Assembly (NCBI GenBank): GCA_904063045.1 | Contig: CAJFCJ010000005.1 | Span: 2,328,588-2,392,587 of the forward strand | Source: Dimorphilus gyrociliatus | Taxonomy: Eukaryota > Animalia > Annelida | Length of the DNA: 64,000 nt | Reading direction: 5' to 3' | Part shown: positions 39,144 to 63,431 of the stretch, piece by piece | How the letters are laid out: each line of letters starts with the position of its first letter | Numbering within the stretch: position 1 is the stretch's first letter | Made by a program: the position numbers and the translations under genes | The notes under the pieces: model-generated | Seen by the model: only the letters and a program-made list of their open reading frames with translations | Told to the model about the DNA's origin: nothing | Databases searched by the model: none

Positions 39144-40430
39144 ATGGAAAATGAAACTGTATCAAATGAAGTTGAAATTACTACAATCGGCAGTTTTATA
39201 ATCAGTAAACCGTCCAATCTGCGCAAGAGAGATTTTGATTTGTCAAGTGTTTTAAAGAAGCATGGTCTTGATAAATCCTTTGTTTTAAATATTAAGAACA
39301 AAACTGAGTCTAACTATATAGAACTTCTTACTGCCAGTAAACGAGAACTGGAGAAACTCGATGACTTTGTTGCTAATTTAATGAATGGTATTAAAAAGCA
39401 TGAATATAACACTGAGAAAAAGATAGCTAGGTTCTATCATAATAAAAGACTAAAGTTAATTAGATTATTAAACGAAGTGAAGCATATAAACGAGTTTTCA
39501 AGAAGATGTAAGAATAAAGCGTTTCAAGAAGAACTATCCAAAATGGCGGACAAAATTAAATATTCCATTAAGTATACTTGCTCGAAGCATTTAACGTATG
39601 AAAAGAACGAAGTGAATGATCTAGATATTGGTTGTGTATCTCTTCCTGATTTTGAGTCGCCATTAAAAAGTTATGAGATTTGTACAAATGATGAATTAAC
39701 ATCAATTATTTCAAGTTCAAGAGGGTTCTATGGCCTTTTTGCAACAGGAGAAATCCTATGCGTGAATAGTAATGATTTAATTTGTTCAAAAGAAAATTCT
39801 GTTGCAAATATTCTTGTTACAAGCGATGAACAACTATGCTACGTAGTAAAGGATGGAAATACGTCTGTAACGCTAACGATTCTATCAAGTCACTATCATA
39901 TATTCGAAAGCTTTACTATCTATTCAGATACGAGACCTTGTACTTTTTCACAATTTGGCGTGTTTAAAGATGTGATATTCTTAACAACGAAGAACCAAGT
40001 AAGATGCTACGAGAAAAACGATATGGTTCATTGGGTTGAATGGAGTCTACTTGATTCCAAGCCCGTTGTACTAGAAACAAAAGATTGTAATGCTTATGTT
40101 GCTTCCGAAGATTACGTCATGATTATTAATTCAATCGACAAGACGACTACAACTCTTACTAGTAAAAGATGCGTTGAAAATATTTCTATTGCAAGAGATA
40201 TTGTTGGAAAAATTAACGATGATTGCGTAATATTGATAATGGAACAGATTATTCACGTGGTCGATCCAGTTAGAGAAACAGATAAAACGTACCATATGGA
40301 GACACTTTTTCCGGGTGAACAACTTAGAACGTATCGTATTCTTGGGAAGCAAGTTATTTTTTGTCTAACTAGTAAGACCGATCGAATGAAGCTAAGCTTT
40401 AGACATTACCCTCTTAATCCCAACGATTAA
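39144..40430 (+). CDS. Cluster family member 2: RING-less, coiled coil plus C-terminal domain
   Basis: 428 aa ORF without coding introns; motifs DIGCVSLPDFESP, RGFYG, ISIARDIV and VIFCL. Confidence 0.85.
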   Translation: MENETVSNEVEITTIGSFIISKPSNLRKRDFDLSSVLKKHGLDKSFVLNIKNKTESNYIELLTASKRELEKLDDFVANLMNGIKKHEYNTEKKIARFYHNKRLKLIRLLNEVKHINEFSRRCKNKAFQEELSKMADKIKYSIKYTCSKHLTYEKNEVNDLDIGCVSLPDFESPLKSYEICTNDELTSIISSSRGFYGLFATGEILCVNSNDLICSKENSVANILVTSDEQLCYVVKDGNTSVTLTILSSHYHIFESFTIYSDTRPCTFSQFGVFKDVIFLTTKNQVRCYEKNDMVHWVEWSLLDSKPVVLETKDCNAYVASEDYVMIINSIDKTTTTLTSKRCVENISIARDIVGKINDDCVILIMEQIIHVVDPVRETDKTYHMETLFPGEQLRTYRILGKQVIFCLTSKTDRMKLSFRHYPLNPND

Positions 40431-41409
40431 TGCGCTGAAGATGATTGATTTCTTAATAATATATTTTTTAGATCATGAGACATTTCACCTGAAAGAGTTG
40501 AAGATGAAAAAATTCAACTTATTCATGATTATTAACTTGATTATTGTGCTGATAACATATATGTATGTATGTTTGTATGTATGTATATTTGTTTGTTAGT
40601 TTAAGGTTAAAGGTTTTGTTTGAATGAAAGTATGGAAATATTTGGTTGATGATTGTAGCTTTTGTAATATATTAAACAGAAATAAACATTTGAAATGAAT
40701 ATATTTCTCTGTATTCTTTGAATTTAAAAGACACTTACGACTGAAATGATTGGACAATAAACTTGAAACAATTAGTCTAATCCCTTGCTGTAGATAGGCC
40801 TTTGTTAGTTATGAGATAATGATATGAAATGATACATTTATTGTTCTTCTAATTTTAAGTGCTTAACACGAAATTACTAAACATATAAATAGTATGATCG
40901 TATGACTTGACTATAAATAACAAAGTCAAAAAGCCCAATACGAAATTAGGTTAAAGAAAATAATAAAAACCCCGTGTTTAGAATCGATAGAAAAGTAAAC
41001 TTTCTTATCTATTCTCCCTACTCAATTATTTGTTTTTAAAAAAAGCTTTCTTTGTACTTTTTCAACAAATGTAAAAAAGAGATGAACCAACAAAACACTA
41101 AATAAAAGACCTAAAAATATAGAATATAAACAATATGTTGTTCAATACTGCTCAGAATTGAGATGTTGGTGTTATTCATTACTTTCGCGAATAATGTTAA
41201 AAAGAAGGACTATTTAAGAAAAAAGTGTGCTATATGTATAAAGTAACATTAATGTAGAGTAGGTGTTACAGCATATATCTAAGAGTTTAGTATTAGGCTT
41301 TAAAGTCAATTAATTCGTTAAGATAATATAGAGTTGAAAGAAAAAAGATAAATGTATTGAAAGTATTTGAAACATGAAATATTGAAATTGATTAGATCGT
41401 TATTATTAT

Positions 41410-42699
41410 TCATTCAGAGCAAATGCAACGGCGGAAATATCTTCGAAACTTGAAAAGTTTTTCATTTGTCGATGTACCAAGGCAAAAGATTACTTCTTCT
41501 TCAGTCATTCTATAGGAGACAAGATATTCTTCTCCAAAAATCGTTTGAGTTTCGTAAACTTCAGCCGAATTCTCTGATGGATCGACGATAAAGATAAAGC
41601 ATTTGGTCGATAATAGAAATTTGCCCTTATTTAGTTCATTAATTAGATTTCTCACAACGGATATCTGACGTTTTCCAATATAGCAGGTAATGTAGGCTTT
41701 TCTATCATCAGAAGTTGCGCTAATGTAGGAACCAACTTCGGTAGTTTCGTACAAAACATTATCAATGATTTTTGAATCCTCCGGAATTTTAGCAGGTTGA
41801 CATTTAGATAATAATCTTGTCCTGTTACTCTTCATCGACAGTTTATATTCAGTGTCGTACAACACCAAATCATCCTTTAGAATATGAAAGTAGGGTAGAT
41901 AATTGGTATAGGTTTTGTTTAATTGGTCAATTAGAGTTAGTTCTTTAAAGCAGTGAGTACTATTAGAGTAAATAAATACTGCAGGAATAGCCGAAACAGA
42001 ATGAGCTATAAACGCCAATTTTCCATCGTAAGTTATTGATATATCTCCAATAGCAAAAGTATTACTCAGAACAATTTGTTTCTTTTCAATATCTATAATT
42101 GATAGTCTCGATTCGCTTGTACAGTAAAATCCATCATCATTCGCTACAATCTTTTTGGGAACAAACTCTAAATCGACAATCTGTTCACCAATAGGATTTT
42201 CAAAAGGTGGAATAATCATTTTACCAATTTCAACGCCTTTAACCGGTTCACATTTTTCATAATAGGCTTTCATTTTCAAAATATTACCAATACAATAAAT
42301 CAGTTTTTCAGCCATTTTTTTAATATCATTCTGAAGATTCTTATTAGTTGTTCTATCGTAATATTCTTTAAGCATTTTCATTTCTTTTACCAGTTTATTC
42401 AACGTAGATAATTTTTCATCGAAAACATTTTCAAGATCCATACGTAAGTTTGTAAATTCCCTACAAACATGAGTTTGAATATTAAATACCTCATCTTTCA
42501 AATTATTAATTTGATTGTATTTATCATTCGTAATATCAATTTTCGCTTTTTCCATATTATCATCTAATATCTTTACAAAATCGTTTGTAAAGAAACCGTT
42601 AAATATTTCCATATTAAATCCATTAGACTCTCCAGAATTTACAACAGTATTCGTAGATTGTTGAGGAGTTTGTTCGTTCATAGATTCAATAGTTTCCAT
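41410..42699 (-). CDS. Cluster family member 3: RING-less
   Basis: First ATG at 42699; motifs EIGKMIIPPFENP, DGFYC, DISITYDGKLAF and VIFCL. Confidence 0.85.
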   Translation of the reverse strand: METIESMNEQTPQQSTNTVVNSGESNGFNMEIFNGFFTNDFVKILDDNMEKAKIDITNDKYNQINNLKDEVFNIQTHVCREFTNLRMDLENVFDEKLSTLNKLVKEMKMLKEYYDRTTNKNLQNDIKKMAEKLIYCIGNILKMKAYYEKCEPVKGVEIGKMIIPPFENPIGEQIVDLEFVPKKIVANDDGFYCTSESRLSIIDIEKKQIVLSNTFAIGDISITYDGKLAFIAHSVSAIPAVFIYSNSTHCFKELTLIDQLNKTYTNYLPYFHILKDDLVLYDTEYKLSMKSNRTRLLSKCQPAKIPEDSKIIDNVLYETTEVGSYISATSDDRKAYITCYIGKRQISVVRNLINELNKGKFLLSTKCFIFIVDPSENSAEVYETQTIFGEEYLVSYRMTEEEVIFCLGTSTNEKLFKFRRYFRRCICSE

Positions 42700-43095
42700 C
42701 TTTTCGTTTGAAAATATTCGCCAAATGTATTCGACCAAATTTCAAAAAGAACTGTAATTAGACGATGGAAAGACGCGGCTATTTATTGAGAAAATTGAGT
42801 TGATCAGTTTTTAACTAGACGAGTAGTTATAAGCGTTTTTTATTATTAGTTAAGTACAGTAATATTTAATGAATGTTTTCTCTATTAGTGCAAAGTACTT
42901 AACTTTTTACCAGTAACCTTTTTTTTGTTGTCTTTTTTATCTCATTAATATTCATAGACAATTAAAAATTATTAATAATGACAAGGTAATATTCATTTCA
43001 AAAAAAGAAATAGAAAATATCTCGTTCATAAGTTTTTCATTTGAATGTTAATTTAAAAAATCCTCCTTTAAAGGAATAGTTGTAGAAGGGAGAAT

Positions 43096-43530
43096 ATGAA
43101 ATCATTTGTTATCTTTATCCTTATCTATTACGCTTTTCTTTCTTTGGGGGAAGAAACAATAATTATGGGTAATAATGTCACATATATAAGCTCTAATCGG
43201 ATTAGAACTCTATTGCCTTTAAACGAGAGTACTTCCACGAGTCACTCGGTAGCACCTTCCATAGGAAAGAGAAGGAAATTAATGACATTCTCTGAAAGGT
43301 TCGCCAAGCTAATGGAAGGTGTGAGACGGCCAAGAAAGAGTTATACTCCTGTTCTTGCCGGTTCTATAAGCGTTTTTGTAGCCGTTCTATTAGGTATTGT
43401 TATTTTTGTATTGGTAAAAAAACGGAGAAGATCTACTAGTACAACAGATGATAATTGCACAAGAGATGTTACTCAAACATTATCTATATCATCCGATTCA
43501 AACGAAACAATAAACGATACCAGTACATAG
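43096..43530 (+). CDS. Small orphan type-I membrane protein, 144 aa
   Basis: Signal-peptide-like MKSFVIFILIYYAFLSLG, sequons NVT and NES, TM segment PVLAGSISVFVAVLLGIVIFVLV followed by KKRRRS, and an S/T-rich tail. Confidence 0.7.
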   Translation: MKSFVIFILIYYAFLSLGEETIIMGNNVTYISSNRIRTLLPLNESTSTSHSVAPSIGKRRKLMTFSERFAKLMEGVRRPRKSYTPVLAGSISVFVAVLLGIVIFVLVKKRRRSTSTTDDNCTRDVTQTLSISSDSNETINDTST

Positions 43531-43612
43531 TTTATTAATTTATCTGTTTGTTTGTTTGTTTGTTTTCATTTATATGTTTTTTATTATTATACATAAATTG
43601 TTTGTATTCATA

Positions 43613-44434
43613 TTAAAATGAAGAGAATTCTTTAAATTTTTGAAATTTTGAACATATTTCACACCAATTATTATTATTATTTCTTAATGATCTAAACAGT
43701 TGGCAGACGACGGCACCGTAACGTCCTTTATTATTCTTAGCAATTAGGACATTCTGAGTACAAATTTGAACGCCATTCAACCTATGAAAGTCATCTTGAA
43801 TAGTTTTAAATAGTTTTTTTGTTAGGTTAATTTTTGTTGAGTCGTTTTGTAAGTCTGAAAGTTTACAAACAGCTGGAATATATTCTGTAACAATTGCTAT
43901 TTGTCTAAAAGTGGGAGATACTAAAGGAACAATTAACAATCCGTAGAATTTAGTAATAATCTCCGATTCATAAGAATGTATAGCTAATAGTGAGGCGTCT
44001 TCCAACACATGTCTAACCTCTCTATGATGAGCCTTAATAAATTTAATAGCAACTGGTTTATCATTAAAACTTGCTAGAAACACTTGATAAAAGGCTCCAT
44101 TACCGATACAAATTGCCGAATTATCATTATTAGAAAGTACTAAATTAATATCAGAATTTATTAAGATATTGAATTTATCATTAAATTCTGGTAGATAATT
44201 ATTAATTAACTGTTCAATACTACTTATAGCTTCATTTTTAATATAATCAGGTAGTTTTATATTTGGAACATTTAGTTCATTTTCCATGTGTAGCTTATTT
44301 AAATTTATTACACAATTATCACTTTTAACATTATAATTGGAATATTTCAATTGTTTATATAGATAAGAAATTGCTATTAATCCAGTAATAGTTATAATAG
44401 TAAATTGATCTAAGTCATTTAAATAGCTATTCAT
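43613..44434 (-). CDS. Truncated protein-kinase-like (pseudokinase) protein with an N-terminal hydrophobic anchor, 273 aa
   Basis: Contains IGNGAFYQVF, VAIK, AIVTEYIP and NVLI. There is no catalytic HRD Asp, DFG is replaced by QLF, and the ORF ends about 25 aa later. Confidence 0.7.
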   Translation of the reverse strand: MNSYLNDLDQFTIITITGLIAISYLYKQLKYSNYNVKSDNCVINLNKLHMENELNVPNIKLPDYIKNEAISSIEQLINNYLPEFNDKFNILINSDINLVLSNNDNSAICIGNGAFYQVFLASFNDKPVAIKFIKAHHREVRHVLEDASLLAIHSYESEIITKFYGLLIVPLVSPTFRQIAIVTEYIPAVCKLSDLQNDSTKINLTKKLFKTIQDDFHRLNGVQICTQNVLIAKNNKGRYGAVVCQLFRSLRNNNNNWCEICSKFQKFKEFSSF

Positions 44435-47029: not shown

Positions 47030-48250
47030 TCATGTAAGATAATACTCTAGAGGAAAATGCTTTAAAGTGACCTTTTCTTGATCTTTAGGATTAATTAGAC
47101 AAAATATAATTTCATTTTCCGTTTTCATATAATTTAATAATCGTTGATCTCGAAAGAATTTATCCATTTGAAAACATTTTCCATTCTTCTCTTTTGAATT
47201 GATAACAAATATATAATATTGATTTATTAAGAGGAAATAATGATCACTTTTCAATTTATCAATAATATTTGATCCAATTGAGAAATTATCATATTCTTCC
47301 TGAATCTGAATAATTTCAAGTTGATCTTCAATTATATTAAACCATATAACATTTTTATTATTATCGGCGGCAAAAAATGTATTCTTATCAATTTTTACGT
47401 CAGTAAAATCAAGTATTCTATTTTCGTAAATTGATAATTTAGAAGAAATTTTACTTGTTAATTTCGAATAGAATATAATCTCTTGATTAGTTTTAATGGC
47501 GATAAAATCTTGAAGAATGAAAAAATGATCGTATATAGGCTTCTCATCTTTAATAGCAATCTTAACAGATTCATACTTTGTATTCGAACCTTCACCAATG
47601 TAAATTTTTATACGATTCTTTCGAGGTGTTTCCATGAAAGCCATTCTTCCGTTATAAGTAATAGATACATTAGTAATAGCACCCTTCCATAGGGATAATT
47701 TATTAAAGTTGTTTATATTAATAATCTGACCGTTATAATCAAATGAAAAGAATCCATCTTCATTAGCTAAAATCTTTTTTGGCCTTTCGTCTAAAAGTAT
47801 TGAATAATCTTTAAATGGTTTTTCAAAACACGGAACTACAATTGAACCAATTTCAAAATTTTCTAATGAATTCGACTTCTCGTATATCGCTCTCTTTGAT
47901 ATAAAATTTTCTAATGAATATTTTACCATATCCATCATATTTGTTACGTCATTTTGAAACATTTTACTACAAGTTTTAGATTGAACATCCTTAAACATTT
48001 TCGTTTCTTTCAATACTCTCCTTATCGTTAGTCTCTTCTCTTCGTAGAAATCCTCTAATTTATCACGAAGAATACCTTGTTTTCTATTGAAAATTTTCAT
48101 AAACTTACAAGTTTCTTCATCTAATTTATTCAATTCGCAATGTTTCTGCTTTTCAATTTTTTCCATCTCTTCAAATATTTTCTTTTCAAAATCTTGAAAG
48201 CATATTTCACTCTGGACTTTTATATCAGTTTTCTCTTCTTTTTCCGCCAT
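47030..48250 (-). CDS. Cluster family member 4: RING-less
   Basis: Probable ATG at 48250 (MAEKEE); motifs EIGSIVVPCFEKP, DGFFS, NVSITYNGRMAF and IIFCL. Confidence 0.85.
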   Translation of the reverse strand: MAEKEEKTDIKVQSEICFQDFEKKIFEEMEKIEKQKHCELNKLDEETCKFMKIFNRKQGILRDKLEDFYEEKRLTIRRVLKETKMFKDVQSKTCSKMFQNDVTNMMDMVKYSLENFISKRAIYEKSNSLENFEIGSIVVPCFEKPFKDYSILLDERPKKILANEDGFFSFDYNGQIININNFNKLSLWKGAITNVSITYNGRMAFMETPRKNRIKIYIGEGSNTKYESVKIAIKDEKPIYDHFFILQDFIAIKTNQEIIFYSKLTSKISSKLSIYENRILDFTDVKIDKNTFFAADNNKNVIWFNIIEDQLEIIQIQEEYDNFSIGSNIIDKLKSDHYFLLINQYYIFVINSKEKNGKCFQMDKFFRDQRLLNYMKTENEIIFCLINPKDQEKVTLKHFPLEYYLT

Positions 48251-48653: not shown

Positions 48654-49886
48654 TTACATTGAATAATCAATAAAATCAAGTCTAAAATGTTTAAATGTAA
48701 AAATTCTATTGGATTGAAGAGAACTATAGCAAAAGATTACTTTTTGATTAGTAATTCGATAATCTAGTAGATTTTCATTACGGAATATTCTATTAGTTTG
48801 ATAGGACGAAGCTGATTTTTTAATAGGATCAATAACGTACAAGTCAGTTGGATTTGATAGGAGAAATTGTCCATTTTTAATTTTTTCAACAATAGCTCTT
48901 CGAAGGTTGAAGTTTTCAGATTTCATATTAATGATAACATCCTCTCTTATTAACGAATCGAGTTTAATTGTAATAATCCTGTCTTGAAGAGAAATGAACA
49001 TAGAATCTCCAAAGATTCTATGATTATAGAATCTTGTATCATTTAGTTCCAATTTTCTTAATTGTTTTCCATTTGAAAGGCTAACGAATGTTATTAAATT
49101 CGATTCGTAAAGTATAAATTCCCTTTCTAGAACGTCGTAGGAGAAACGCTTTTTATCGGTTGGAATAGCTATTGTATGAGTAATATGATTACAATCCGAA
49201 AGGATGTAGAGGGTAAGTCTACCCGAACGAGAATTAGCGATAAATGATAATTTTCCATTATAAGTTATACATATATCCTTAATTAAATGCGATGTTCTAT
49301 AGAACGTTTTCATAGTTAGATCAAAGATGTTACCCATTTGAGATAATCCAAAGAATGTTATTGAATTTGAAATGATTTTTTTCATATTAATATTTAATGT
49401 ATAACATTCCTCATCGTCTGGATTGTTTAATATTGGAAAACAAATATTTCCAATTTGGAAATTATCCACCAAATTATCAATTTTCTCAAAAATAGCCTTA
49501 TTTTTAATGCAAAATTTTAAAGATTTCTCAAGTTTTTCGTGTAGTTCATTAATTGTTATATCGTTTATTATATTTGTTTGATTCTCTTCATATTCTTCTA
49601 AAGTAGTTATTTCATCTAAAAACATATTTAATAACGATTTTTTATTGGTGTAGAATTTCTCTATTTCATCTTTTAAACTGTTCTCTTTACCTTGTAGTTT
49701 CTCTATTAAATTCATCTTTTCATTATTAATTTTAGACAATTCAGTTTGTTTTACAATATCTATCGTTTGTAACGTTTCTATAGCCATTTGTCTAAGAATC
49801 GTATAGCTTTCGAGTTTTGGTAAATCCCTATAATTGATTAATTGCCTTACATTCATTTCTATTAAATTTTCATGTATTTCCGCCAT
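48654..49886 (-). CDS. Cluster family member 5: RING-less
   Basis: 410 aa; motifs QIGNICFP, DICITYNGKLSF, GQFLLSN and VIFCY. Confidence 0.85.
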   Translation of the reverse strand: MAEIHENLIEMNVRQLINYRDLPKLESYTILRQMAIETLQTIDIVKQTELSKINNEKMNLIEKLQGKENSLKDEIEKFYTNKKSLLNMFLDEITTLEEYEENQTNIINDITINELHEKLEKSLKFCIKNKAIFEKIDNLVDNFQIGNICFPILNNPDDEECYTLNINMKKIISNSITFFGLSQMGNIFDLTMKTFYRTSHLIKDICITYNGKLSFIANSRSGRLTLYILSDCNHITHTIAIPTDKKRFSYDVLEREFILYESNLITFVSLSNGKQLRKLELNDTRFYNHRIFGDSMFISLQDRIITIKLDSLIREDVIINMKSENFNLRRAIVEKIKNGQFLLSNPTDLYVIDPIKKSASSYQTNRIFRNENLLDYRITNQKVIFCYSSLQSNRIFTFKHFRLDFIDYSM

Positions 49887-50085
49887 GTTTTTTTGATGAA
49901 GAATATGAATTATGTTTTTTTCAATTCTATTTTTCAGAAAATATTGTAAACGTTCTCTTCGAAAAGACTTGAAAGTATTAAAATTGAGTACTTTTTTAAT
50001 ACTCTAGACAGAGTTGTATTATATATCCAGGTTAAAGAAACTTCACTTTGTGGCTGGTCTGGCTACCAACAATTTTGAAATAGAT

Positions 50086-50790
50086 ATGGCAGGAAACCGT
50101 CAACAGCGTTCTGACGCTGGCCCTAGAAATTCAAAGAAACGAAAATCTAGAGCTAACGAATTGAAATCTGGAAATGACGGACCTCCTCCTACAAAAATCT
50201 ATTTTCAGGAGTCCGCTCAGAAGTCAAACAAATACCAAAACGTTGCAGCAGCAGCCACATCACCTATGGTCCAACCGCAAATAGCAACAGAAGGAGACGA
50301 TGATTTAAATAATTTCACTGATGTATTCTTTGACGAAGAATTAGATGAAAAGTTAATTGAACTGGAGAAAGAGAAGGAAAAGGAGTTGAAAGAAATTGAT
50401 AATACTTATCGGGAAGTTAAAGATTTACTCTTTAAGAAAAGTGAATTACTACAAGAGAATCTTAAATATCTAAACGAAGAGAAGAAGAGGAGAATGCAAA
50501 ATCTATTGGATGAAACTTATAACCATTTCAGCCAACGCTACAACATCCGCGAAACAACTTTACACGAATTGGCCGAAAATGAAGAACCAGTTGATCTTCA
50601 AGTTGCTAAGAATCTTATTGTGAAAATGTCTTATTCGGAAAAAGATGGCGTAAAAGAAGTTGAAATTGAACAAGTTACATTACCAGATTGTCTTATGGCT
50701 ACTCCTAGAGCTTCACAATCCAATTCGTCAAAAGCTACAACAACCCGACGTCCCAAGCAATCATCATCAACACCAATCAGTAAAAAGTAA
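50086..50790 (+). CDS. Cluster family member 6: coiled coil only, with basic NLS-like N-terminus
   Basis: MAGNRQQR...SKKRKSR, then the family coil ELDEKLIELEKEKEKELKEID...EEKKRRMQNLLDE. No C-terminal domain. The 3' end may be spliced. Confidence 0.65.
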   Translation: MAGNRQQRSDAGPRNSKKRKSRANELKSGNDGPPPTKIYFQESAQKSNKYQNVAAAATSPMVQPQIATEGDDDLNNFTDVFFDEELDEKLIELEKEKEKELKEIDNTYREVKDLLFKKSELLQENLKYLNEEKKRRMQNLLDETYNHFSQRYNIRETTLHELAENEEPVDLQVAKNLIVKMSYSEKDGVKEVEIEQVTLPDCLMATPRASQSNSSKATTTRRPKQSSSTPISKK

Positions 50791-51144
50791 GTAAAATAAC
50801 CACTAAAATTCGACTTTAATACAATTAACTAAACGTAAATATATAATTGCAGTTAACCTATTCAACATATCACCAGTCTACTTCCGGTATGGTTTTTCTA
50901 ATCAGACTTGGTAGTATATTTTTTTATGAAGAATGGATTAAATTTCATTAACGGATCAATTAGTTAATTAATAATATTAATTTAAGAGTATTATGAAGGA
51001 TTTGAATAATTTGATTATTCCCAAATTATTTAATAATAGATTAATTACATTCCAGAAATAATAAAATCAAATATATAAATTAATAGTTCGCTATCATTTG
51101 TTTTATTCTCATTCTTTTTTCTAGGTCATTATTATCTGCTCTGA

Positions 51145-52542
51145 TTAATTTATTTTCCTTTCATAGTGCTTGAAGATTAATTCGCCGGGTTTTATTTTAT
51201 TTCTTAGACAAAAGATTACTTTGTCGTCGGTTAACAAATAGCTGGTAATACGCCCATCCTCAAAGATTTTCTGATGATGATAATAACGGGCTAAGTTAGC
51301 TATTGGATCAACGATAAAAACGTAATCGATATCGGTGAGGAGTATATTTCCAATATCCAATTTATTAATGATATCTTCTCTAATTGAAAAATCACCAATA
51401 GATAGCATAACGTCAATTGTAGAAGTTAATTTATTTTCGCTATCGATTCTATATACTTTCTTATCTTGTTGAAGAATATAGGCGTTATCTCCTATTATCT
51501 TGAAATTTTGTATCCAATTTGAAAATTTCAATAATTTTAAAGATCTTTCTTTTTTATTAAATATCCAAAAGTTTTCAAATGTTGAAAAGCAAATTGAATT
51601 TTTAAACTGTACATTCTTAAACGATTCTAAAGTTGAAAATGTCTTAAAAACAACTATTTCCGGTCTCTTTTCCAATGCTCCTACTTTTAATAATATTTTA
51701 TCTCTTTGATAATTGTTTTGTAACATTGGACAAAGGAAATATATATCTTCATTTTCTTCATCAATACTAAGATCTTCAACTGCGCATTTAACGCAATAGT
51801 TTGATTCGTTATTTGATAATTTATATATTCTATTCCTCCATGGTTCTATTTCGGATGTAAAGGCGTAAAATTCATTTTTTGATACTATGACTTTTCTTGG
51901 AAATTTATTCAAATAGATCTTAGTTTCGATTATAGGCTGTTGGTAATCAATTATAGAAACTGTACTATTTTTAAATTTATTCCTTTTATGATCTCTTTGA
52001 TAAAAAACTCTGTTTTCTAATATCTCTTTTTGGAGGTCGTGAAGACGTTTTTGAAACTTAGAAATTAACTCTGAACATTCTGAATCGTTCTTCCCCGATT
52101 TCGACTCTGTAAACTTCTTACTAGACGATGTTATATTGTCCAATAATTCTTGAGCGTTTCTACCTCTTTTATTAAAGAATTCAATTATTTCGGCTCTTTG
52201 AACTGCTTGACGTTCCATTATTATTTTCAATTCATCAGCGGCTTCCGTGTTCAATTTTCTCAATTCTCTATTCATATCGAGCTTATTTTTGTCTAGATGT
52301 GTTAAGACTTCAAGTTTAAGTTGTTCGCTTGCCTTTATATAATAGTGTTCCGCATTTTGATCGTTATCTTGACTATCGGAAGGTTTATTACACGTAGGAC
52401 AAACAAAATGATCAACAGAGATCTCATTGCTTTCGTGATTGCTCGTAAGGCAATCTATACAAACATTATGACCATTTTTACAAATAACATATTTAACATG
52501 CTTATCCATGGTACTTTGAAATCTAGTATCAGAATGATCCAT
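51145..52542 (-). CDS. Cluster family member 7: degenerate RING, coiled coil and C-terminal domain
   Basis: First ATG at 52542. Contains ICKNGHNVCIDC...CPTC, FSIREDIINKL and VIFCL. Confidence 0.8.
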   Translation of the reverse strand: MDHSDTRFQSTMDKHVKYVICKNGHNVCIDCLTSNHESNEISVDHFVCPTCNKPSDSQDNDQNAEHYYIKASEQLKLEVLTHLDKNKLDMNRELRKLNTEAADELKIIMERQAVQRAEIIEFFNKRGRNAQELLDNITSSSKKFTESKSGKNDSECSELISKFQKRLHDLQKEILENRVFYQRDHKRNKFKNSTVSIIDYQQPIIETKIYLNKFPRKVIVSKNEFYAFTSEIEPWRNRIYKLSNNESNYCVKCAVEDLSIDEENEDIYFLCPMLQNNYQRDKILLKVGALEKRPEIVVFKTFSTLESFKNVQFKNSICFSTFENFWIFNKKERSLKLLKFSNWIQNFKIIGDNAYILQQDKKVYRIDSENKLTSTIDVMLSIGDFSIREDIINKLDIGNILLTDIDYVFIVDPIANLARYYHHQKIFEDGRITSYLLTDDKVIFCLRNKIKPGELIFKHYERKIN

Positions 52543-53623: not shown

Positions 53624-53992
53624 ATGGCAAGATTTAGTGATTATTGTGACGTATTGGAGAAAAGTAAAAACAGCAATAAACAAGAATTATTGCAGTTGGC
53701 AAAACAAATTCAAGAGAAGATTGCGTTAATTGAACAACAGAAGAAGATAGAATTGGAAAATTTAAATAATACAATTATGTCTATTATACAAACGATTCTT
53801 TTGCATACGAATTTGTTTGACGACGACGATGACGACGAAGAAGAAGAAGAAGAAGACGATGATGAGGAGGAAGGTGAAGACGATTATGAATATTATTACA
53901 ATGACGAAGAAGGTAATGATAATGATCATGATCATGATGACGACGACGACGACGACGATGATGATGATGATGATGGGAACTTTTCTCTATAA
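53624..53992 (+). CDS. Cluster family member 8: partial coiled coil fused to a poly-Asp/Glu tail
   Basis: LAKQIQEKIALIEQQKKIELENLNNTIMSII matches the family coil; it is followed by about 55 mostly D/E codons. Confidence 0.6.
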   Translation: MARFSDYCDVLEKSKNSNKQELLQLAKQIQEKIALIEQQKKIELENLNNTIMSIIQTILLHTNLFDDDDDDEEEEEEDDDEEEGEDDYEYYYNDEEGNDNDHDHDDDDDDDDDDDDDGNFSL

Positions 53993-54672: not shown

Positions 54673-55536
54673 ATGGAAAATAGCGAAAGTAAGAATAACT
54701 CGAACGTTTTGAAAGAGAGAGAGGAGAGAAAGGCTAAGGCTAAGGAAGAGTATGATAATTTATCCGAAAAATTAAATACATATATCAGCCAGTTAGACGA
54801 TCAAAAGGACAAAGAAATAAATAAACTTAATCACGAAGTAACTTCGCTGATAGCGAAAATTAAGAAGCAAGAAAATGCCCTTCAAGATGAAATTGAAATA
54901 TATTTCGCTGACAAAAAGTCCACCTTGAACCAATTGTTGAACGATGCTAAGAAATTATATGAAATTCAAGATCAAATTTTTACGTTACAACTTCAAAGTG
55001 ATTTAACAACGGCAATGAGCAATTTAAGGCGAGAATGTACTGTTCTGATGGACAAAACCGGTGTATTTCAAAAGAGCTTGGCTTTTGAACAGTTTGATAT
55101 TGGAATATTTACGGGAAACAGGAAGCCACTTTTCGACCTGAATGATATATTATCATCAGACAAAGATAATAAAAGCTTAGCGAATTCAGGTAAATTTAAA
55201 TGAACATATAATTTAATGTATTAAAAAGCTTTTCTTTTTTTTTACTATATTAATATTATAGAGAATAAGAGTGAGTGTGAACAAGCAAATAACATGTTCT
55301 CTACATCCCCGGATAAACAACCTTTGTCAAAGGAATTAATTTCTACTGCACCTAGGAAGAAAAAAATTGAAAAAGTTGCTAAGAATTTTGAAGGAGTAAA
55401 ATTTGGTAAATTATTTATTATATTTGTTTATAAATAAACAAATATTAATATTTGTTTATTTGTATTTATAGCAGGATTTGGATCAGGATTTACTTTCGGT
55501 AACGCAGAGCCGAAAAATTCGTTTACATTCAAATAG
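54673..55536 (+). CDS. Cluster family member 9: coiled coil with a spliced FxFG-like tail, 3 exons
   Basis: Family coil up to FEQFDIGIF, then two phase-1 introns leading to VKFAGFGSGFTFGNAEPKNSFTFK*. Confidence 0.7.
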
Positions 55537-55651
55537 GAGCAGTAAGAAATAAAGAGTTAATCAAAATATGTAAAGTTATTGAGAGAGTAGGAAACAAGTT
55601 TATAATTGTTTTTATTGTATATTTCTTCAATTTTTTATCGGTTTTTATATA

Positions 55652-56881
55652 TTAAACAAAGTTATAATTGAGGTTAATTGGAAAATATTTGAATATTAAT
55701 CTAGATTCATCCTCTAAACAGGATAGGCAAAAGATAATTTGTTCGTTATCAATTCTATAGTTTAATAATCTTTCTTGAGGGAATACTCTCTCCATTTTGA
55801 TTGTCATTGCCAATAGACTTTGAGGACAGATAAGAATAATATTTTCATTAGCGCATACAACAAGAAATCCTTTTGTTGTTATATAATCAATTATCTTTCG
55901 TAATACTGATTTATTACCTCCTTCGTCTAATTCTTGAATGATAATATCTTTCCATTCGTTCTTCTCTAAATCAGCAAATACTAATAGATTGTCAGATATA
56001 TTGTATAAAACATTTTCCATAACAATATTATGTTCAAATTTCATTATTCTACTTGATAAGGATACAGTTTCCGTTGTTTTTTTATGTCTTTTGACAATTG
56101 TTGAATTTTGATAGAGAAGGATAAAATCTTTTAAAACTGCAAATTGTTCAGTAAATCTCTCATTAGATTGTTTTTGAATAGTATAATATTCAGAACTGTA
56201 GAAAGGTTTTGTTATAATTGATACAGTTGCTGAAGATTTCAATAATTGAATATAAGATATTCTATTATCGTTTGTCATTGTTATACTATCAATTTTACCA
56301 TCAACACTATAAATAACCTGATTTCTTTGTAATTCAACAATTTCGCATGAATTTCTAAGAACATAAAATCCATTTTCGTTCGATATTACTTTATCAATTT
56401 TATCATGAAATTCTATGAATTCTTCTTTAATTGGATTTTCAAAATTTGGTATTTTAAGATTGCCAATTTCAAGGCCATTTAAAGAATCGGATTTTTGGAA
56501 AACGCCCTTCTTTCTCATTAGGTTATCGGCGTAGTATTTAACGTTTTCAATCATCTTTGAAAAATCACTTTTTAATATCTTATCTGGAATTTTCTTACGA
56601 TTTTCGTATAATCTTTCAATATACGATACAATATTTTTAAGATTATCCTTCTTTTCCGAGTAGAATAATTCAATTTCAGTTCGAATATCTTCCTGTCTAT
56701 CGTGTATGCTTATCATTAATGACGTAATCTCCGTATTAAGTTTATGTAAGGCTATCCGCTTTTCTTCGTCGATTTTCTCAATTTTACCTTGAATTTTATT
56801 GATAAATAATGAAAAATCATCTTCAGAGAATTCTATTTCATCGTTCAATCGCTTATCAGAAGGATGAACAACTTCCCCCAT
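55652..56881 (-). CDS. Cluster family member 10: RING-less
   Basis: Probable ATG at 56881; motifs EIGNLKIPNFENP, NGFYV and IIFCL. Confidence 0.85.
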   Translation of the reverse strand: MGEVVHPSDKRLNDEIEFSEDDFSLFINKIQGKIEKIDEEKRIALHKLNTEITSLMISIHDRQEDIRTEIELFYSEKKDNLKNIVSYIERLYENRKKIPDKILKSDFSKMIENVKYYADNLMRKKGVFQKSDSLNGLEIGNLKIPNFENPIKEEFIEFHDKIDKVISNENGFYVLRNSCEIVELQRNQVIYSVDGKIDSITMTNDNRISYIQLLKSSATVSIITKPFYSSEYYTIQKQSNERFTEQFAVLKDFILLYQNSTIVKRHKKTTETVSLSSRIMKFEHNIVMENVLYNISDNLLVFADLEKNEWKDIIIQELDEGGNKSVLRKIIDYITTKGFLVVCANENIILICPQSLLAMTIKMERVFPQERLLNYRIDNEQIIFCLSCLEDESRLIFKYFPINLNYNFV

Positions 56882-57265: not shown

Positions 57266-58495
57266 ATGTCTAAAGTAAACGCCGATTATTTATGTAATAC
57301 TTTCTTTAATAGAAATAATAATTATAAAATAATAGATAGGAATGAATTCTCAAAGTTTAAATTGCGTTTAATAGAACGAATTAATAGTATTGACGTAAAT
57401 ATGGAGAATGAAATACAAAATTTAAGAGATTCAATTGATATTTTAAATAATGAACTTAGCAGACAGAAAATTGAGATGGAGACGAAACTTAAGGATTTTT
57501 ATGATAATAAGAAGAAGATATTAGAACAATATCTATCCGATGTTAATATTTTACAAGAGACTTATGATAAAATTTCAACTGATTTTCTTAAAGATGAACT
57601 ATTGACAATGATTGATTGCATAAAGGAACTATCTAAGAAGATTTCAAATGAGAAAGGCGTATTTAGACCATCAGAATATTTAGATGATATAAAAATTGGT
57701 AAATTTTCAGTATCGATTGACGAAAAACCTTTTAAAGAATATTCAATTCAGTTGAAAACTCCAATCGAAAAGATTATTGGCAATAAAAATGAATTTTTTA
57801 CTATTCTTAATGGAAATCAAATATTCGAATTAAAGGATAATAAGGTTATATTAACAACTAAAGATAGAATTGATGATCTATCAATTACATTTGATAAAAT
57901 GATATCGTATTGTCAATTTTCAAAGGAGAAAATCAAAATTTTCATCCTAAATGAGAATAATTATGCTGTTGAAGACAATTTTGAGATAAATTTTCAACAT
58001 TTCACTGCGGATTACGCAACATTTTCAGTATTGAAAGATACTATATTAATTCACGATAAATCTCAAGTATTAATGTTTAATAAGGAAACAATAGAATTAT
58101 TCTTCTGTTGGACTTATGGAGAAAATAGGAGTGGAGAAATTTCCAATAGGATTAACGAGAACACGTGCTATCAATATTTCAATCAAACTGGCCTAATATT
58201 CGAAAGTTTTAATGAAAGTAATAAGAATTTTCAAATTAACTCAAATAGAAAATTAATTAAATCTATTAAAGATATTATAACTGAGTTAAGGAACGGAAAG
58301 GTTCTCTTCTGTCATGGAGGAAAGTTAATTATTTTAAATCCTTTTACTTTAGAAAGTTATTTTATAATTATGTCAAAGATTTTCCCTGAAGAGAAGCTCT
58401 TAGATTATTCTATATCTAATAATGAGATAATCTTTTGCTTTTGTAATAGAATTAATCAATTATCTATTACTTTTAAACATTTCTATATTGATTAA
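57266..58495 (+). CDS. Cluster family member 11: RING-less
   Basis: 409 aa; motifs KIGKFSV, DLSITFD, IKDIITELRNGKVL and IIFCF. Confidence 0.85.
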   Translation: MSKVNADYLCNTFFNRNNNYKIIDRNEFSKFKLRLIERINSIDVNMENEIQNLRDSIDILNNELSRQKIEMETKLKDFYDNKKKILEQYLSDVNILQETYDKISTDFLKDELLTMIDCIKELSKKISNEKGVFRPSEYLDDIKIGKFSVSIDEKPFKEYSIQLKTPIEKIIGNKNEFFTILNGNQIFELKDNKVILTTKDRIDDLSITFDKMISYCQFSKEKIKIFILNENNYAVEDNFEINFQHFTADYATFSVLKDTILIHDKSQVLMFNKETIELFFCWTYGENRSGEISNRINENTCYQYFNQTGLIFESFNESNKNFQINSNRKLIKSIKDIITELRNGKVLFCHGGKLIILNPFTLESYFIIMSKIFPEEKLLDYSISNNEIIFCFCNRINQLSITFKHFYID

Positions 58496-58756
58496 TACAA
58501 AAATTAAAGATGCTTAAAATGTTGGTTAAACTGCGGGAATATTCTTCAATACGACATTTATGATTCAGTACAGTTTTTCAATAATAAATATATCGAATAC
58601 AATAGGCAAGTAGGCCGATTTGCTGTAGAAGCATTGCCTGCTATGAGATTTGGCATTCTTTTTTCTCCAACTATCTTATAAGTTAATTCCGAATTTTCAT
58701 TGGTTAAAGTAGCTGATAGAGTAACGGATTATAAGCTAAATAATAAATCTTGGAAT

Positions 58757-60133
58757 ATGGCTTCTGATTGTGCGATCTGTATGGAGAGTTTAAACGATAA
58801 GGATGTTAGACAGTTGCCCTGTCATTCTAGTCATCTGTTCTGCTATCAGTGCCTATTTAAATACGCCGAATCAAATAGGATTCGATTTGGGGATTCTTTG
58901 CCATGTCCGATATGTAAAACGGAAATAGTATGGCCAAAAAATGGGGTAGAATCATTGAAAAGAGTATTTCTAAGAAGATCTCTATCGGAAAGTGATTTTG
59001 GTTCAATGTTAGCAAACGAAAGAAGGAAAACCTTACAAGAGCGGAAGAAAAATTTTGATCTATTAGAAGAACAAACGAATTATTTAATAAAGAAACTTTT
59101 AGATAAGAAAGCTTGTATTGAACAGCAATTGAATAGATTTTATGATGAGAAAATTGAAAATCTTGAACGATTAGAGAAGGAAGCTGAGGAATTGAACAAT
59201 ACACAACTAATCGATTTACCAAATCTAGGTAAATTGTCTAAAGAGGACAGAGAAAGAGATTTGAATATTTCTATAAAAGATATATTAAGGCAGAAGATTT
59301 CTGTTGAAAAGAGAAATTCTCACTCAGAACTATGTAAGGTTACCTACTCGAAGGAGGAAGAGCCAGCCTTTCAATACGGACTTGTTCAACAAGGTCCTCA
59401 TTATATAATTGGAGGTAATTATTGTTTCTTTCTTCAAACTGTTTCCGGTTTTTACGAATGTTCAAATTCTAACGCTCTCCTCTACGATGCAATTAATTTT
59501 TCAAGCGCTAATATAAGCAACGATTCATCATTATTCACTTTCACACAAGACGAAACTGCTCTGCTACATAGTCAAATTTGTAAATGGGATAAGAATACTA
59601 AACTATTCTATAAATATCCAACAACTGGAGCGTCAATTGACGAAATTGATTGGGATGATTTCGTCTATTTCCGCCATAAAAACGACATTATCATTTACGA
59701 TATAAGATCAGCTAAACTTGTTCGTCAACCATTATACGACCAATTCAAAAACAGTTGCCATACCAAATTCAAAAATGGTACTTGGTTTATACTTAAAAAT
59801 GGATACGATTTCCGATATTATCCAATGAAAAATCTAATTACAACAAGAAATTATCAAGGTCATAATGTCCTTATTCAAATACAAGATGGAAAGATCTCAA
59901 TTAGACAAGATATAATTAATGAATTAAGAAATGGTAAAATACTATTTTCCAATGAAAAATACGTCTTTTTATTGGATGAGAATTTAAAAAGTGCTAAAGC
60001 CTATTTACAAAAGAATCTTTTTAGAGAAGGTCAATTAAAAGCTCATTTTCAATCATTAACCGAAATTCATTTTTGTATATTAACAAATATTTCACAAAGC
60101 ACTCAATATTTAATGAAATGCTATAAATTTTAA
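58757..60133 (+). CDS. Cluster family member 12: RING, coiled coil and C-terminal domain; putative E3 ligase
   Basis: CAIC..LPCHSSHLFCYQC..CPIC..WPKNGVESL, the family coil, ISIRQDIINELRNGKILFSN and IHFCI. Confidence 0.9.
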   Translation: MASDCAICMESLNDKDVRQLPCHSSHLFCYQCLFKYAESNRIRFGDSLPCPICKTEIVWPKNGVESLKRVFLRRSLSESDFGSMLANERRKTLQERKKNFDLLEEQTNYLIKKLLDKKACIEQQLNRFYDEKIENLERLEKEAEELNNTQLIDLPNLGKLSKEDRERDLNISIKDILRQKISVEKRNSHSELCKVTYSKEEEPAFQYGLVQQGPHYIIGGNYCFFLQTVSGFYECSNSNALLYDAINFSSANISNDSSLFTFTQDETALLHSQICKWDKNTKLFYKYPTTGASIDEIDWDDFVYFRHKNDIIIYDIRSAKLVRQPLYDQFKNSCHTKFKNGTWFILKNGYDFRYYPMKNLITTRNYQGHNVLIQIQDGKISIRQDIINELRNGKILFSNEKYVFLLDENLKSAKAYLQKNLFREGQLKAHFQSLTEIHFCILTNISQSTQYLMKCYKF

Positions 60134-60901
60134 ATAAAAAATAAAGATAGAAGGACCAAAATAAAAAACATAAAAGAAATTTTTATTTAAATACTTTTGT
60201 TTTTTTAAAAAAAAAAAATTAGCCGGTTTTTTTTTTTCTATTCTTATCTTCTTAATCAACGTAAATTTTTTTTTTGCAAAAATGCATTATTAATGAAAAA
60301 TAATATAAAAACAATAAAAAGTTTTATTAAGTGAATTTTAAAAAAAAAGAAAAAAAACACAAAAGAAAATTGAATTATTACACAAAGAACAATTGAAACA
60401 ATTAAACAATTTTAGTCAATTATTCATTTTTAAACAGGTAGAAATATTTTCATTTAGATAAAGTATAAAAAAAATTATAGGAAGATAAAATTTAATATGG
60501 CTACCGGTTTGATTTGAAATTAAAACGAGCGGAGAAGGAAATGAGATGGGAAAAACCACAGTAATCCGTGAGTCATTTAGCTATAACCTCCTTGAAAAGG
60601 GGTTAACCACGTGGGTTTTTCTTATATATATATATATTACTAAATAGCTGAGCCTAATCAGATAGTATCTTCTATTTAAAGGTAGGTGGGTTTATTCTAT
60701 ATATTCTACTAGAAAATAAGAGAATTTAACCTATTTTACACTCTTTATTAATTTAATTGTTTGTTTTCCTATTACGTGACATTACAATGTATTAGCTGTT
60801 ATTAAGTATTCATTAAGATTACTGGGAAATCTCGTATTGACCACTTTCTAATCAATATATGCACTTTAGTAACCGATAAATATTGGTTTCATATATTTTC
60901 T

Positions 60902-62332
60902 ATGAAAAATTTACTATTTAACCTAGATAATTTGCCAAGGACTTTTGCAATGGAATGCAGTATTTGCTTAGAGAATCTCTGCTCTTCTAAAGAAACAAAG
61001 AGACTACCTTGCTATTGGTCTCATGTATTCTGTACAACCTGTTTAAAAGATATTATAGAAAGAAAGGATATAGGCGGATATTTCTCGTGTCCAATTTGTC
61101 AACACCCGATAAAATATCCTGAAGGTGGCATTGAAACATTTAGGAGTATTGATACAAAAAAGACTTGTATGGAAAATTACAAAGATGAGATTAATAGAGA
61201 GACTGAAAGACTGAATTTAAAAAGGAAAGCGGATATTGATGAATTAAATAAACATGTTAAATGTTTAAAACAATCAATTGATAATGATGAGACACGTATT
61301 AGTTATAAAATATGCAATTTCTACAATGGTATGAAAGAAAGCTATCGTCAAATTGCAGAGAATATTACAGATTATTTAAAATCGGAGGCTCTCTATACAA
61401 ACTCTGTTCAAAATAGAAAATTAATAACTTTCAAGGAGACAATAATTAGTTCAGTAGATAATAATATATCGAAGAACATTGTATTAAACTTCTCGGAGCC
61501 TAGACTTAATTATGTAAAATTACAATTCCAACACGAGGAAAAACCTGTTAAAGAATACTTTAGAGAAATGCCAGAGTCTTTTCGAATATTTGGTGGTGAT
61601 AATTGTTTTTTGGTTGTGTACGATAGGCAAATTTTTGAGTGGAATAGCAACGAATATATTCGTCATGCAGGTGGCGTTGAATTTACCGATGGTGCTATAA
61701 ATAGTAATAAGGAATTTTATGTTTATAAAACGCTTCCTCAAAACAGAGAGGAACGGGGAACGGTTGTGCAATGGTGTTACAAAGATAAATCTTTTCAGTC
61801 AATCTACAATAAGAGAAACGAGGAGGAGGTTAAAATAAATGGTAAAAAGTTCTTAGTCTTTACAAATCAAACAAGTCTTGTCCTATTCGATTTACAAACT
61901 GGTCAACTAATAAACATTGATCTGCATTACGACCTTTCCTGCTGGAAGACGAAATACATTAGTCATGGGGATATTTACTTTCTACGAGATAGCATAAATC
62001 TTCAATACTTTCCTATTAGTAAGTTAATTGACGATAAAATATTACCTGGAAATAACATACTCATAAATATTCATCACGAACAAATATCTATAAGAAACGA
62101 TATAATAGAAGAAATTGTTATGAATGAAAGAGTTTTACTATCTAATGAACAATTTGTATTCATCTTGAATGAGAACAATAAATCTGCTATTGCCTATCCC
62201 CAAAGAAATGTATTTCAGGAAGGTCAAATAATAAGCTATTTTGTTACCGACAATGATATCCACTTTTGCATTTTGTGCGAATCGTTAGCAGGTAAACATT
62301 GTTTAATTAAGAGCTATCTTCTCAAAGTATAA
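60902..62332 (+). CDS. Cluster family member 13: RING, coiled coil and C-terminal domain; putative E3 ligase
   Basis: CSIC..LPCYWSHVFCTTC..CPIC..YPEGGIETF, ISIRNDII and IHFCI. The start may instead be the ATG at 60950. Confidence 0.9.
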   Translation: MKNLLFNLDNLPRTFAMECSICLENLCSSKETKRLPCYWSHVFCTTCLKDIIERKDIGGYFSCPICQHPIKYPEGGIETFRSIDTKKTCMENYKDEINRETERLNLKRKADIDELNKHVKCLKQSIDNDETRISYKICNFYNGMKESYRQIAENITDYLKSEALYTNSVQNRKLITFKETIISSVDNNISKNIVLNFSEPRLNYVKLQFQHEEKPVKEYFREMPESFRIFGGDNCFLVVYDRQIFEWNSNEYIRHAGGVEFTDGAINSNKEFYVYKTLPQNREERGTVVQWCYKDKSFQSIYNKRNEEEVKINGKKFLVFTNQTSLVLFDLQTGQLINIDLHYDLSCWKTKYISHGDIYFLRDSINLQYFPISKLIDDKILPGNNILINIHHEQISIRNDIIEEIVMNERVLLSNEQFVFILNENNKSAIAYPQRNVFQEGQIISYFVTDNDIHFCILCESLAGKHCLIKSYLLKV

Positions 62333-62912
62333 CTGATTTGTTATATAAACATATAGATACAAATACAGCCGAAAAATTATTTTCAACACATTTTGTCAAT
62401 TTTATATTGTCTAGAAAATAAAGTAACAACTGCGCCATCTAACGATGAACCAGAAAAAAGTTTTGTCATTTTCATTAAAAATGAAAAAGCAAAGAAAAAT
62501 TGTTTTTTATTTTTTTTTTAAAAAAACAAAAGCAAACCAAAAAAACTTTCTCTTTCAATTGTCCTTTTATCCTTTAGAAAACAAAATATTCCTTTTCAAA
62601 AAACTTTCGAAAAGCTATAAAGATAAAAACAAACAATTAGAGGATAATGTACAAAAAAAAACAAACAACAACAACCAGTTTTAGACCAAATTTGTGTATT
62701 TTTAAGGATTATCTAGTCATGTTTATTACGTATGATTTGTTTTTACTAAAAAAAAAAAGAATGAAATAAAATAGAGGTTATAGGCTTAAAAAAAATCATT
62801 AAAAGTTATAAATAAGTATATATTGCATAGTTATATACATTGGATACAGTACATAAATAATAGATAGTCGGTATGTAAAAATCGTTATATTCCACTTTTG
62901 ATTAATCTAAAT

Positions 62913-63431
62913 TTATCTAAAGAATCCTCTAAGGTCGTTTAAAAGACTAGCAAAAAAGTTTACATGATAATGAAAACTTTCTAAACGATCTTGCCGATTT
63001 GAATGGCGTATATTATAATCGTCATTTTCATTGTAATCGTCCTCATCGTTATCACGACTTCCGTTAAATGATGAAGTATTTTGCCTTCCGTATTCATTAA
63101 GAGTAGAAACATTTTTAATGATAACGTTCTTTCGTTTTTTTCGCTGATAAGAGCGAGTACTATCAGAATTCTCCTTGGATATTTCTCTATTATTTAATAT
63201 ACGAAGTGAAATTGAATAAAACATTGAATTTTTTATCTTTTCAAAAGATTTAATTCCTTTTTTAGGCCATTCGAGTTCCCTTTGACAAAGTGGGCATAGG
63301 AAATAACTTCCAGCCTTTATATCTTTTAATCTAGCGTATTTTTGAAGACATTTATCACAAAATATATGCTTCGAATGACAGGGTAGACATCTTCCATTCC
63401 TGAAAGGATCTTTACAAATTGGGCATTCCAT
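62913..63431 (-). CDS. Cluster family member 14: RING-only protein, 172 aa
   Basis: CPIC..LPCHSKHIFCDKC..CPLC..WPKKGIKSF, then RKKRK and a low-complexity tail. No coil or C-terminal domain. Confidence 0.85.
   Translation of the reverse strand: MECPICKDPFRNGRCLPCHSKHIFCDKCLQKYARLKDIKAGSYFLCPLCQRELEWPKKGIKSFEKIKNSMFYSISLRILNNREISKENSDSTRSYQRKKRKNVIIKNVSTLNEYGRQNTSSFNGSRDNDEDDYNENDDYNIRHSNRQDRLESFHYHVNFFASLLNDLRGFFR

Follow-up and report, generated by a model that had tools for sequence, protein, structure and literature searches.

The TRIM/RBCC proteins are built from an N-terminal C3HC4 RING, one or two B-boxes and a coiled coil that forms antiparallel dimers. In class VII, the TRIM-NHL proteins, a filamin repeat stands before the NHL domain in TRIM2, TRIM3 and TRIM71 and is absent from TRIM32. 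TRIM ligases have usually been viewed as fixed units of RING, B-box, coil and substrate domain, with RING-less or truncated forms regarded as oddities or splice variants. Here we analyse a 64,000-nucleotide stretch of the genome of the small marine annelid Dimorphilus gyrociliatus (GenBank assembly GCA_904063045.1, contig CAJFCJ010000005.1, positions 2,328,588 to 2,392,587 of the forward strand; hereafter the window), which carries between its positions 35442 and 63431 a cluster of 14 paralogous open reading frames (ORFs) encoding RING, coil and propeller modules in various combinations.

The Drosophila TRIM-NHL protein Brat has no RING and acts through its NHL domain without ligase activity of its own (PMC4015489). 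TRIM16, likewise without a RING, heterodimerises with other TRIMs (PMC3357404). The RING of TRIM3, inactive alone, is reactivated by heterodimerisation with the RING of TRIM2, and the two proteins associate in cells (PMC9732051). We found no report in the literature of a family like the present one in Dimorphilus, or of B-box-less TRIM-NHL expansions. What is new here is a set of conserved coil-only, RING-only and half-RING derivatives, together with their transcripts and orthologs, and a tree of two subfamilies; deposited gene models of the region are also corrected.

Domain content and ancestry of the cluster

All 14 ORFs lie at the positions given in an earlier note on this DNA, by which they are named here, and they align as one family. 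The note had counted two full genes, one with a degenerate RING, seven RING-less, three coil-only and one RING-only, a count that stands under Pfam and under six-frame scans with family hidden Markov models (HMMs). Ten of the 14 have a coil of ~110 residues followed by a C-terminal domain of ~270 residues, and the remaining four are short.

The HMMs, for the RING, the coil and the C-terminal domain (a propeller, as described below), were built from the family and searched against all six-frame stop-to-stop fragments of the window. The RING HMM matched 58757, 60902, 63431 and the minus-strand fragment 51145-52602, in which 52542 lies, with everything else at E >0.4. In Pfam, the zf-RING_2 cut-off was exceeded by 58757 and 60902 only, and the zf-C3HC4 cut-off (21 bits) by 63431. 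The short introns of D. gyrociliatus motivated a look for RING exons hidden upstream of the seven RING-less genes, and none was found in the six-frame scan of the whole window. Exactly ten genes were matched by the propeller HMM, and the same six-frame search of the window found no propeller relics beside the short genes. The coil HMM matched, in addition, 50086 and 54673 and, weakly, 53624 (scores in Table 1); in an alignment of 12 members, taking in RING-bearing, RING-less and coil-only forms, the coil is nearly gapless. With neither a hidden RING exon nor a propeller relic in six frames, the modular split described in the earlier note is genuine and not an artefact of gene models.

The eight zinc ligands are complete in 58757, 60902 and 63431. 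Six of the eight remain in 52542, which has lost the C1, C2 pair and the post-RING motif and kept C3-H4-C5-C6-C7-C8, and which has no in-frame ATG upstream. No member gave a zf-B_box match in Pfam at E up to 1, and in the full-length model of 58757 the RING and the helix are so close (~20 residues) that there is no room for a B-box. A filamin/ABP280 repeat was likewise without a Pfam match in the members, and in the model the propeller comes directly after the stalk.

That model (predicted local distance difference test, pLDDT, 83.6) consists of a RING at residues 1-60, a helix of 70 residues at 78-147 with block-mean pLDDT mostly 80-93, a return helix at 156-178 and a propeller at 181-457. 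The C-terminal domain modelled from 42699 (scores in Table 1) is all-beta, with ~24 strands. Foldseek of this domain against the PDB returned generic propellers only (TM-scores of 0.4-0.5), and a shape search of the ESM Atlas was likewise generic. In an all-against-all structural search, the NHL domains of Brat (Z 12.5), Mei-P26 (12.0), TRIM2 (11.9) and NHL-2 (11.6) took ranks 1, 2, 4 and 6. When the N-terminus of 58757 was compared with all PDB sequences, seven chains were matched and all seven were TRIMs: TRIM2 three times (best 2e-6), TRIM32 twice, TRIM56 and TRIM3. The alignment extends through a post-RING P..GV..L motif, which reads WPKNGVESL in 58757 and LPEKGVAAL in TRIM2, and the family RING profile gave TRIM matches in the same way. 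The family is best read as a B-box-less descendant of TRIM-NHL-type ubiquitin ligases, which by definition is no TRIM. Given this TRIM-type descent, the analogy with TRIMs drawn in the earlier note is a fair one.

Transcripts, orthologs and subfamilies

Transcript evidence was taken from the contigs of the only public run found to contain this DNA, its kind not on record, and covered window positions 50000-55999. The contigs differ from the window in zero letters, skip four GT..AG introns and do not cover the spacer that separates 53624 from 54673 (no depth at 54000-54599), and for these reasons the run is taken to be cDNA. The four joints (50787-50852, 53556-53616, 55190-55261 and 55406-55474) are all plus-strand GT..AG and all lie in the three coil-only genes. 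These three genes are transcribed and spliced, so that spliced contigs exist for three of the four short genes.

The 50086 protein has a basic N-terminus with a KKRK motif resembling a nuclear localization signal (NLS), a full coil and a Ser/Thr/Lys-rich tail; its intron sits at the stop codon and alters the last residue only. For 54673 the transcript gives three exons (54673-55189, 55262-55405 and 55475-55536), and the ORF of 176 amino acids (aa) in the earlier note is superseded by a protein of 240 aa, in which the coil is followed by a KKK patch and a phenylalanine-glycine (FG)-like run, FGFGSGFTFG. The deposited DgyrCDS3675 (241 aa) agrees with this spliced form, with an acceptor 3 nt further upstream. 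A tandem acceptor, TAGCAG, is found here (55469-55477): splicing in the transcript contig is at the downstream AG (240 aa), and that in the deposit is at the upstream AG, which adds one Ala. In 53624, an intron in the 5' untranslated region precedes ~40 residues resembling the start of the coil and then a poly-Asp/Glu tail; this may be a decaying or newly arisen gene, though it is transcribed. The RING-only 63431 has a RING and the post-RING motif, followed by a low-complexity middle of poor conservation and a conserved motif at the C-terminus; it lacks both coil and propeller, and no deposited protein of 95-301 aa matched it. A stretch of the form FFasLLNDlrGfFR closes this protein in both worms (window 62913-62960; end of P0065 in contig L005), and the C-terminal motif may serve for docking. 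No short gene exceeds 32% identity to a full-length relative in the set, which marks these genes as old; a recent pseudogene origin was rejected on the same ground.

The cluster was further compared with Logan contigs of a related worm, which are syntenic with the window and 66-77% identical to it in coding DNA. Contig L001 carries orthologs of 56881 (minus strand), 57266 (plus) and 58757 (plus) in the same order and orientation, and the first two are RING-less there too. On L005, P0065 is a RING-only ortholog of 63431, with 167 aa and 44% identity; it and the 60902 ortholog lie tail-to-tail, an arrangement also found in the window. A random sequence of the composition of the window would hold 167 codons open with a probability of 5e-7. 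L006 carries P0018, an ortholog of 52542 in which the identical Cys pair is missing and the identical six ligands are retained (the two form a sister pair in the tree, support 100/99), as well as an ortholog of 48250 and, at 6128-6934, a coil-only ortholog of 50086 with 268 aa and 56% overall identity, convergent with the 52542 ortholog. The end of exon 2 of 54673 and its FG-like exon 3 are recognisable at L001:164-214 and just downstream of it, downstream of the 56881 ortholog, so the related worm probably has the 54673 gene too.

Ratios of nonsynonymous to synonymous substitution (dN/dS) were estimated by the Nei-Gojobori method (NG86), with dS of 1.1-1.8. In 50086 the coil is 76% identical between the two worms (dN 0.154) and the ends 41-43%, with an overall dN/dS of 0.22. 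The overall value for 63431 is 0.28, compared with 0.08 for its RING and 0.53 for its tail; for 52542 it is 0.41, and for 60902 it falls to 0.10 within the RING. Purifying selection is strongest on the retained module of the short genes, namely the coil of 50086 and the RING of 63431. The RING-less and reduced states predate the split of D. gyrociliatus and the related worm (dS >1). The earlier note had named truncated members that are unexpressed and evolving neutrally as an outcome that would refute it; in at least three of the four short genes, spliced contigs, syntenic orthologs with intact ORFs and low dN/dS speak for the opposite.

Gene turnover was also seen. Where D. gyrociliatus has the short acidic ORF 53624 (53556-53992), the related worm has a full-length RING-coil-propeller gene; an orthology of 53624 with this gene, at the syntenic place L006:2475-3929, was rejected, as there is no detectable similarity. 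The position of 49886 is taken in the related worm by a divergent propeller ORF of 321 aa with no coil signal.

Beyond the window, word-index protein searches found one relative each, and the family became visible only by an exhaustive profile search of 1.84 billion protein representatives, which yielded 60 relatives only. Ten of these were looked up, of which five are D. gyrociliatus deposits and five come from Logan assemblies only. Among the relatives looked up, this large gene family has so far occurred only in D. gyrociliatus and in Logan assemblies. The family RING is present in ~22 of the 60 representatives, of which Pfam alone sees 14. A maximum-likelihood propeller tree of 50 rows, from which fused or duplicate models and fragments of <225 residues were left out, falls into two groups (support 91/81): one of 21 rows, 18 of them with a RING or a remnant, and one of 29 rows, 28 of them RING-less. 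Three rows had been relabelled by eye from their N-termini, P0019 and P0022 as divergent Cys patterns and P0041 as a 5'-cut model that starts at the post-RING motif. RING state changes 4 times on this tree, compared with 15.3 in shuffles, and 7 times when the HMM labels are used unedited. Of the window genes, the seven without a RING are all placed in the RING-less group, and 52542, 58757 and 60902 in the RING group; overall identity between full RING members and RING-less members of the window is ~14-19%. The RING-bearing and RING-less members are two old subfamilies. Because the propeller tree groups members by RING state, RING loss was mostly one old event followed by expansion, and not repeated recent decay.

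The individual members are collected in Table 1. The window is AT-rich (GC 26-38%). The 35442 ORF forms exon 1 of the deposited multi-exon models DgyrCDS3671, DgyrCDS3672 and DgyrCDS3673 (889, 907 and 662 aa), and the first 400 aa of this member contain no Pfam domain. Its extension (window 35442-36999) has ~360 aa, is acidic and Ser-rich, and occurs in three deposited isoforms; the GC maximum of the window (38%) lies just downstream, at 36001-38000. For 60902 the start is probably the ATG at 60950 (460 aa), judging from the ortholog, which begins at MEC.

Table 1. Members of the cluster, in window coordinates (L, related-worm contig; dN/dS between orthologs; pTM, predicted template modelling score)
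Member	Coordinates	Strand	Description	Evidence
35442	35442..38576	+	RING-less, long disordered N-terminal extension	coil and propeller HMM matches in last exon, 36999-38576
39144	39144..40430	+	RING-less, coil and six-bladed propeller, 428 aa	HMM matches; identical deposit P0003
42699	41410..42699	-	RING-less, 429 aa	HMM matches; deposited as P0005; propeller modelled (pLDDT 80.7, pTM 0.82)
48250	47030..48250	-	RING-less, 406 aa	HMM matches; ortholog L006:9227-10486, 54% identity, dN/dS 0.21
49886	48654..49886	-	RING-less, 410 aa (deposit 400 aa, later Met)	HMM matches
50086	50086..50856	+	coil-only, 234 aa	coil HMM 85 bits; deposited as P0063; spliced transcript contig
52542	51145..52542	-	half-RING, coil and propeller	RING HMM match on fragment 51145-52602(-)
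53624	53624..53992	+	short ORF, weakest member	coil HMM 16 bits, E 0.001; transcript contig
54673	54673..55536	+	coil-only, three exons, 240 aa	coil HMM 111 bits; two GT..AG joints in transcript contig
56881	55652..56881	-	RING-less, 409 aa	syntenic RING-less ortholog L001:359-1651, 58-59% identity, dN/dS 0.22-0.24
57266	57266..58495	+	RING-less, 409 aa, fast-evolving	syntenic RING-less ortholog L001:2369-3667, 38% identity, dN/dS 0.46
58757	58757..60133	+	full: RING, post-RING motif, coil, six-bladed propeller, 458 aa	zf-RING_2 31.9 bits; ortholog P0001, 65% identity, dN/dS 0.23
60902	60902..62332	+	full, 476 aa	zf-RING_2 31.1 bits; ortholog L005:1935-3332, 52% identity, dN/dS 0.20
63431	62913..63431	-	RING-only, 172 aa	zf-RING_2 24.9 bits, zf-C3HC4 21.7 bits; syntenic ortholog P0065

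The cluster also contains unrelated small genes (43096-44434 and 45844-46128), encoding a single-pass membrane protein and a CCCH-like fragment, and an ORF of 273 aa with a partial protein-kinase match (E 6e-5). Two pairs of members, 49886/50086 and 52542/53624, stand head-to-head with very short divergent promoter regions (49886-50086; 52542-53555), and transcript contigs run together across the opposite-strand neighbours. Operons or trans-splicing were considered as a cause of the dense packing and set aside, neither being reported in the D. gyrociliatus genome paper (PMC7854359).

Proposed working and rival explanations

We favour, with moderate confidence, the reading that this is a B-box-less family derived from TRIM-NHL proteins and divided into two old subfamilies, whose reduced forms are mostly conserved and whose roles are those that TRIM biology would predict. 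In its full form the protein has a TRIM2/3-type RING at its extreme N-terminus, and a short post-RING motif leads from there to a helical stalk of ~100 residues and a six-bladed propeller. The family divided early into the RING-bearing and RING-less subfamilies, and several shorter derivatives arose besides: coil-only, coil with an added tail, RING-only and half-RING genes. By analogy with TRIM coils (PMC9732051), the stalk is expected to dimerise; the propeller would present a ligand-binding face, and the RING-bearing members would be E3 ligases that transfer ubiquitin. The RING-less members may act non-catalytically, either in the manner of Brat, which acts through its NHL domain, or as competitors or partners of the ligase members. 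Coil-only proteins would act by coil association, with their NLS-like and FG-like tails setting location. The strong constraint on a coil with nothing else attached to it suggests that coil-mediated association matters, and the tails are compatible with an adaptor role.

Several points weigh against this reading. Dimerisation, ligase activity and ligands are all assigned by analogy. The NHL domains are tied in their Z-scores with phytase and other unrelated six-bladed propellers, and a sequence-level identity of the propeller, whether NHL or WD40, was sought in Pfam and by a profile search against PDB sequences and was not obtained, so that the NHL link is one of fold and architecture only. 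Propeller isoelectric points (pI) run from 4.9 to 9.1 across members, so that the propellers do not share the basic character of RNA-binding NHL domains; a uniform Brat-like RNA-binding role is therefore not indicated. The RING begins at residue 3-5, with no helix preceding it, and in TRIM2 it is an N-terminal helix that drives RING dimerisation (PMC9732051). The dN/dS values are rough and indicative only, as dS is saturated, and the single, contig-only run gives no strand, level or tissue and leaves 63431 and the full members outside the covered stretch. Of the 54673 ortholog only the last two exons, both small, are seen, at a contig end, and 53624 is marginal in its family signal, with no ortholog found in the related-worm contigs.

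In the proposal of the earlier note, the RING-less coil-propeller proteins would be sensors and would pair with a few catalytic RING members in mixed antiparallel dimers, with the coil-only proteins as decoys or localisation adaptors. RING-bearing, RING-less and coil-only members do share a homologous coil that aligns with hardly a gap, as mixed dimers would require, and in coil-only 50086 this coil is the best-conserved part; NLS-like and FG-like motifs occur in the coil-only tails, and TRIM16 (PMC3357404) and TRIM2/TRIM3 (PMC9732051) provide precedents. However, the two subfamilies are old, with little overall identity between their members in the window, and the ratio of many sensors to few executors is a local one, about one third of the family representatives being RING-bearing. 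To our knowledge, moreover, the TRIM heteromers on record pair close paralogs. Lacking a coil, the RING-only protein could not join by the proposed route, nothing indicates a sensing or immune role, and RING-less TRIM-NHL proteins of the Brat type function without a ligase partner (PMC4015489). We regard such a network as unlikely. An autonomous or regulatory, Brat-like action of the RING-less members appears at least as likely and is rated the likelier of the two, given the deep divergence of the subfamilies, the fact that RING members are not scarce across the genome, the missing coil of the RING-only protein and the lack of any pointer to sensing. A bolder arrangement, which we consider distinctly improbable, is a combinatorial split ubiquitin-ligase system, in which separately encoded and conserved modules (RING-only, coil-only with targeting tails, coil-propeller and RING-coil-propeller) would join in trans by way of a common coil and a docking motif; if true, propeller 'readers' in great variety would draw on a few common subunits for catalysis and localisation.

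Alternatively, the short and RING-less genes might be functionless by-products of birth and death in a tandem array, decaying and transcribed through the compactness of the genome. Gene content around 53624 and 49886 does differ between the two worms, 53624 combines its marginal coil signal and lack of a detected ortholog with a repeat-derived acidic tail, 57266 and 52542 evolve fast (dN/dS 0.41-0.46), and the contigs do not separate own transcripts from read-through. Against this, ORFs are intact at dS >1 in the orthologs of 50086, 63431, 52542, 56881, 57266 and 48250 (for random sequence, a probability of ~1e-7 or less), selection is strongest on the retained module, the plus-strand GT..AG introns are those of the short genes, and the two coding exons gained by 54673 are seen in a relative too. 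General decay thus seems very unlikely. It is hardly credible that the modules are exons of larger genes, or that RING exons were overlooked, even though DgyrCDS3671 and DgyrCDS3672 attach upstream exons to 36999 and the deposited DgyrCDS3676 (P0002, 1204 aa) fuses 57266, 58757 and 60902 by splicing out each end. The related worm has separate ORFs, with RING-less N-termini, and for this reason the three-gene fusion (57266-62332) is most likely an annotation artefact of dense packing. Furthermore, every gene forms a complete ORF and has a start and a stop of its own, no other RING-like fragment exists in six frames of the window, the intervals after the short genes (355-680 bp) are below the length of a propeller and hold no relic of one, and the transcript contig closes 54673 in small exons of its own and not in a propeller.

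In this single compact animal genome each combination of modules is a gene of its own, and most of the forms are kept in a related worm. The cluster offers a natural set of 'deletion constructs' for asking how a TRIM-type coil acts alone, whether a RING can work in trans and whether RING-less propellers need a ligase partner.

Comparison with described TRIM proteins

The seven RING-less members resemble Brat in combining a coiled coil with a six-bladed propeller and having no RING. Brat differs in its two B-boxes and in the basic, RNA-binding surface of its NHL domain, whereas the present family has no B-box and propellers that span a wide range of pI. TRIM16 and the TRIM2/TRIM3 pair are precedents for mixed assembly; in the present family, the RING-bearing and RING-less subfamilies are deeply diverged.

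The class VII TRIM-NHL proteins (TRIM2, TRIM3, TRIM32, TRIM71/LIN-41, Mei-P26 and NHL-2) are also close; with them the family shares an N-terminal RING, a post-RING motif, a long helical stalk and, at the C-terminus, a six-bladed propeller of ~270 aa, for which NHL domains rank highest in structure searches, level with other six-bladed propellers. It differs from them in having no B-box, no filamin domain, no NHL repeat detectable in sequence and no pre-RING helix, and in consisting of intronless or nearly intronless genes in large tandem arrays.

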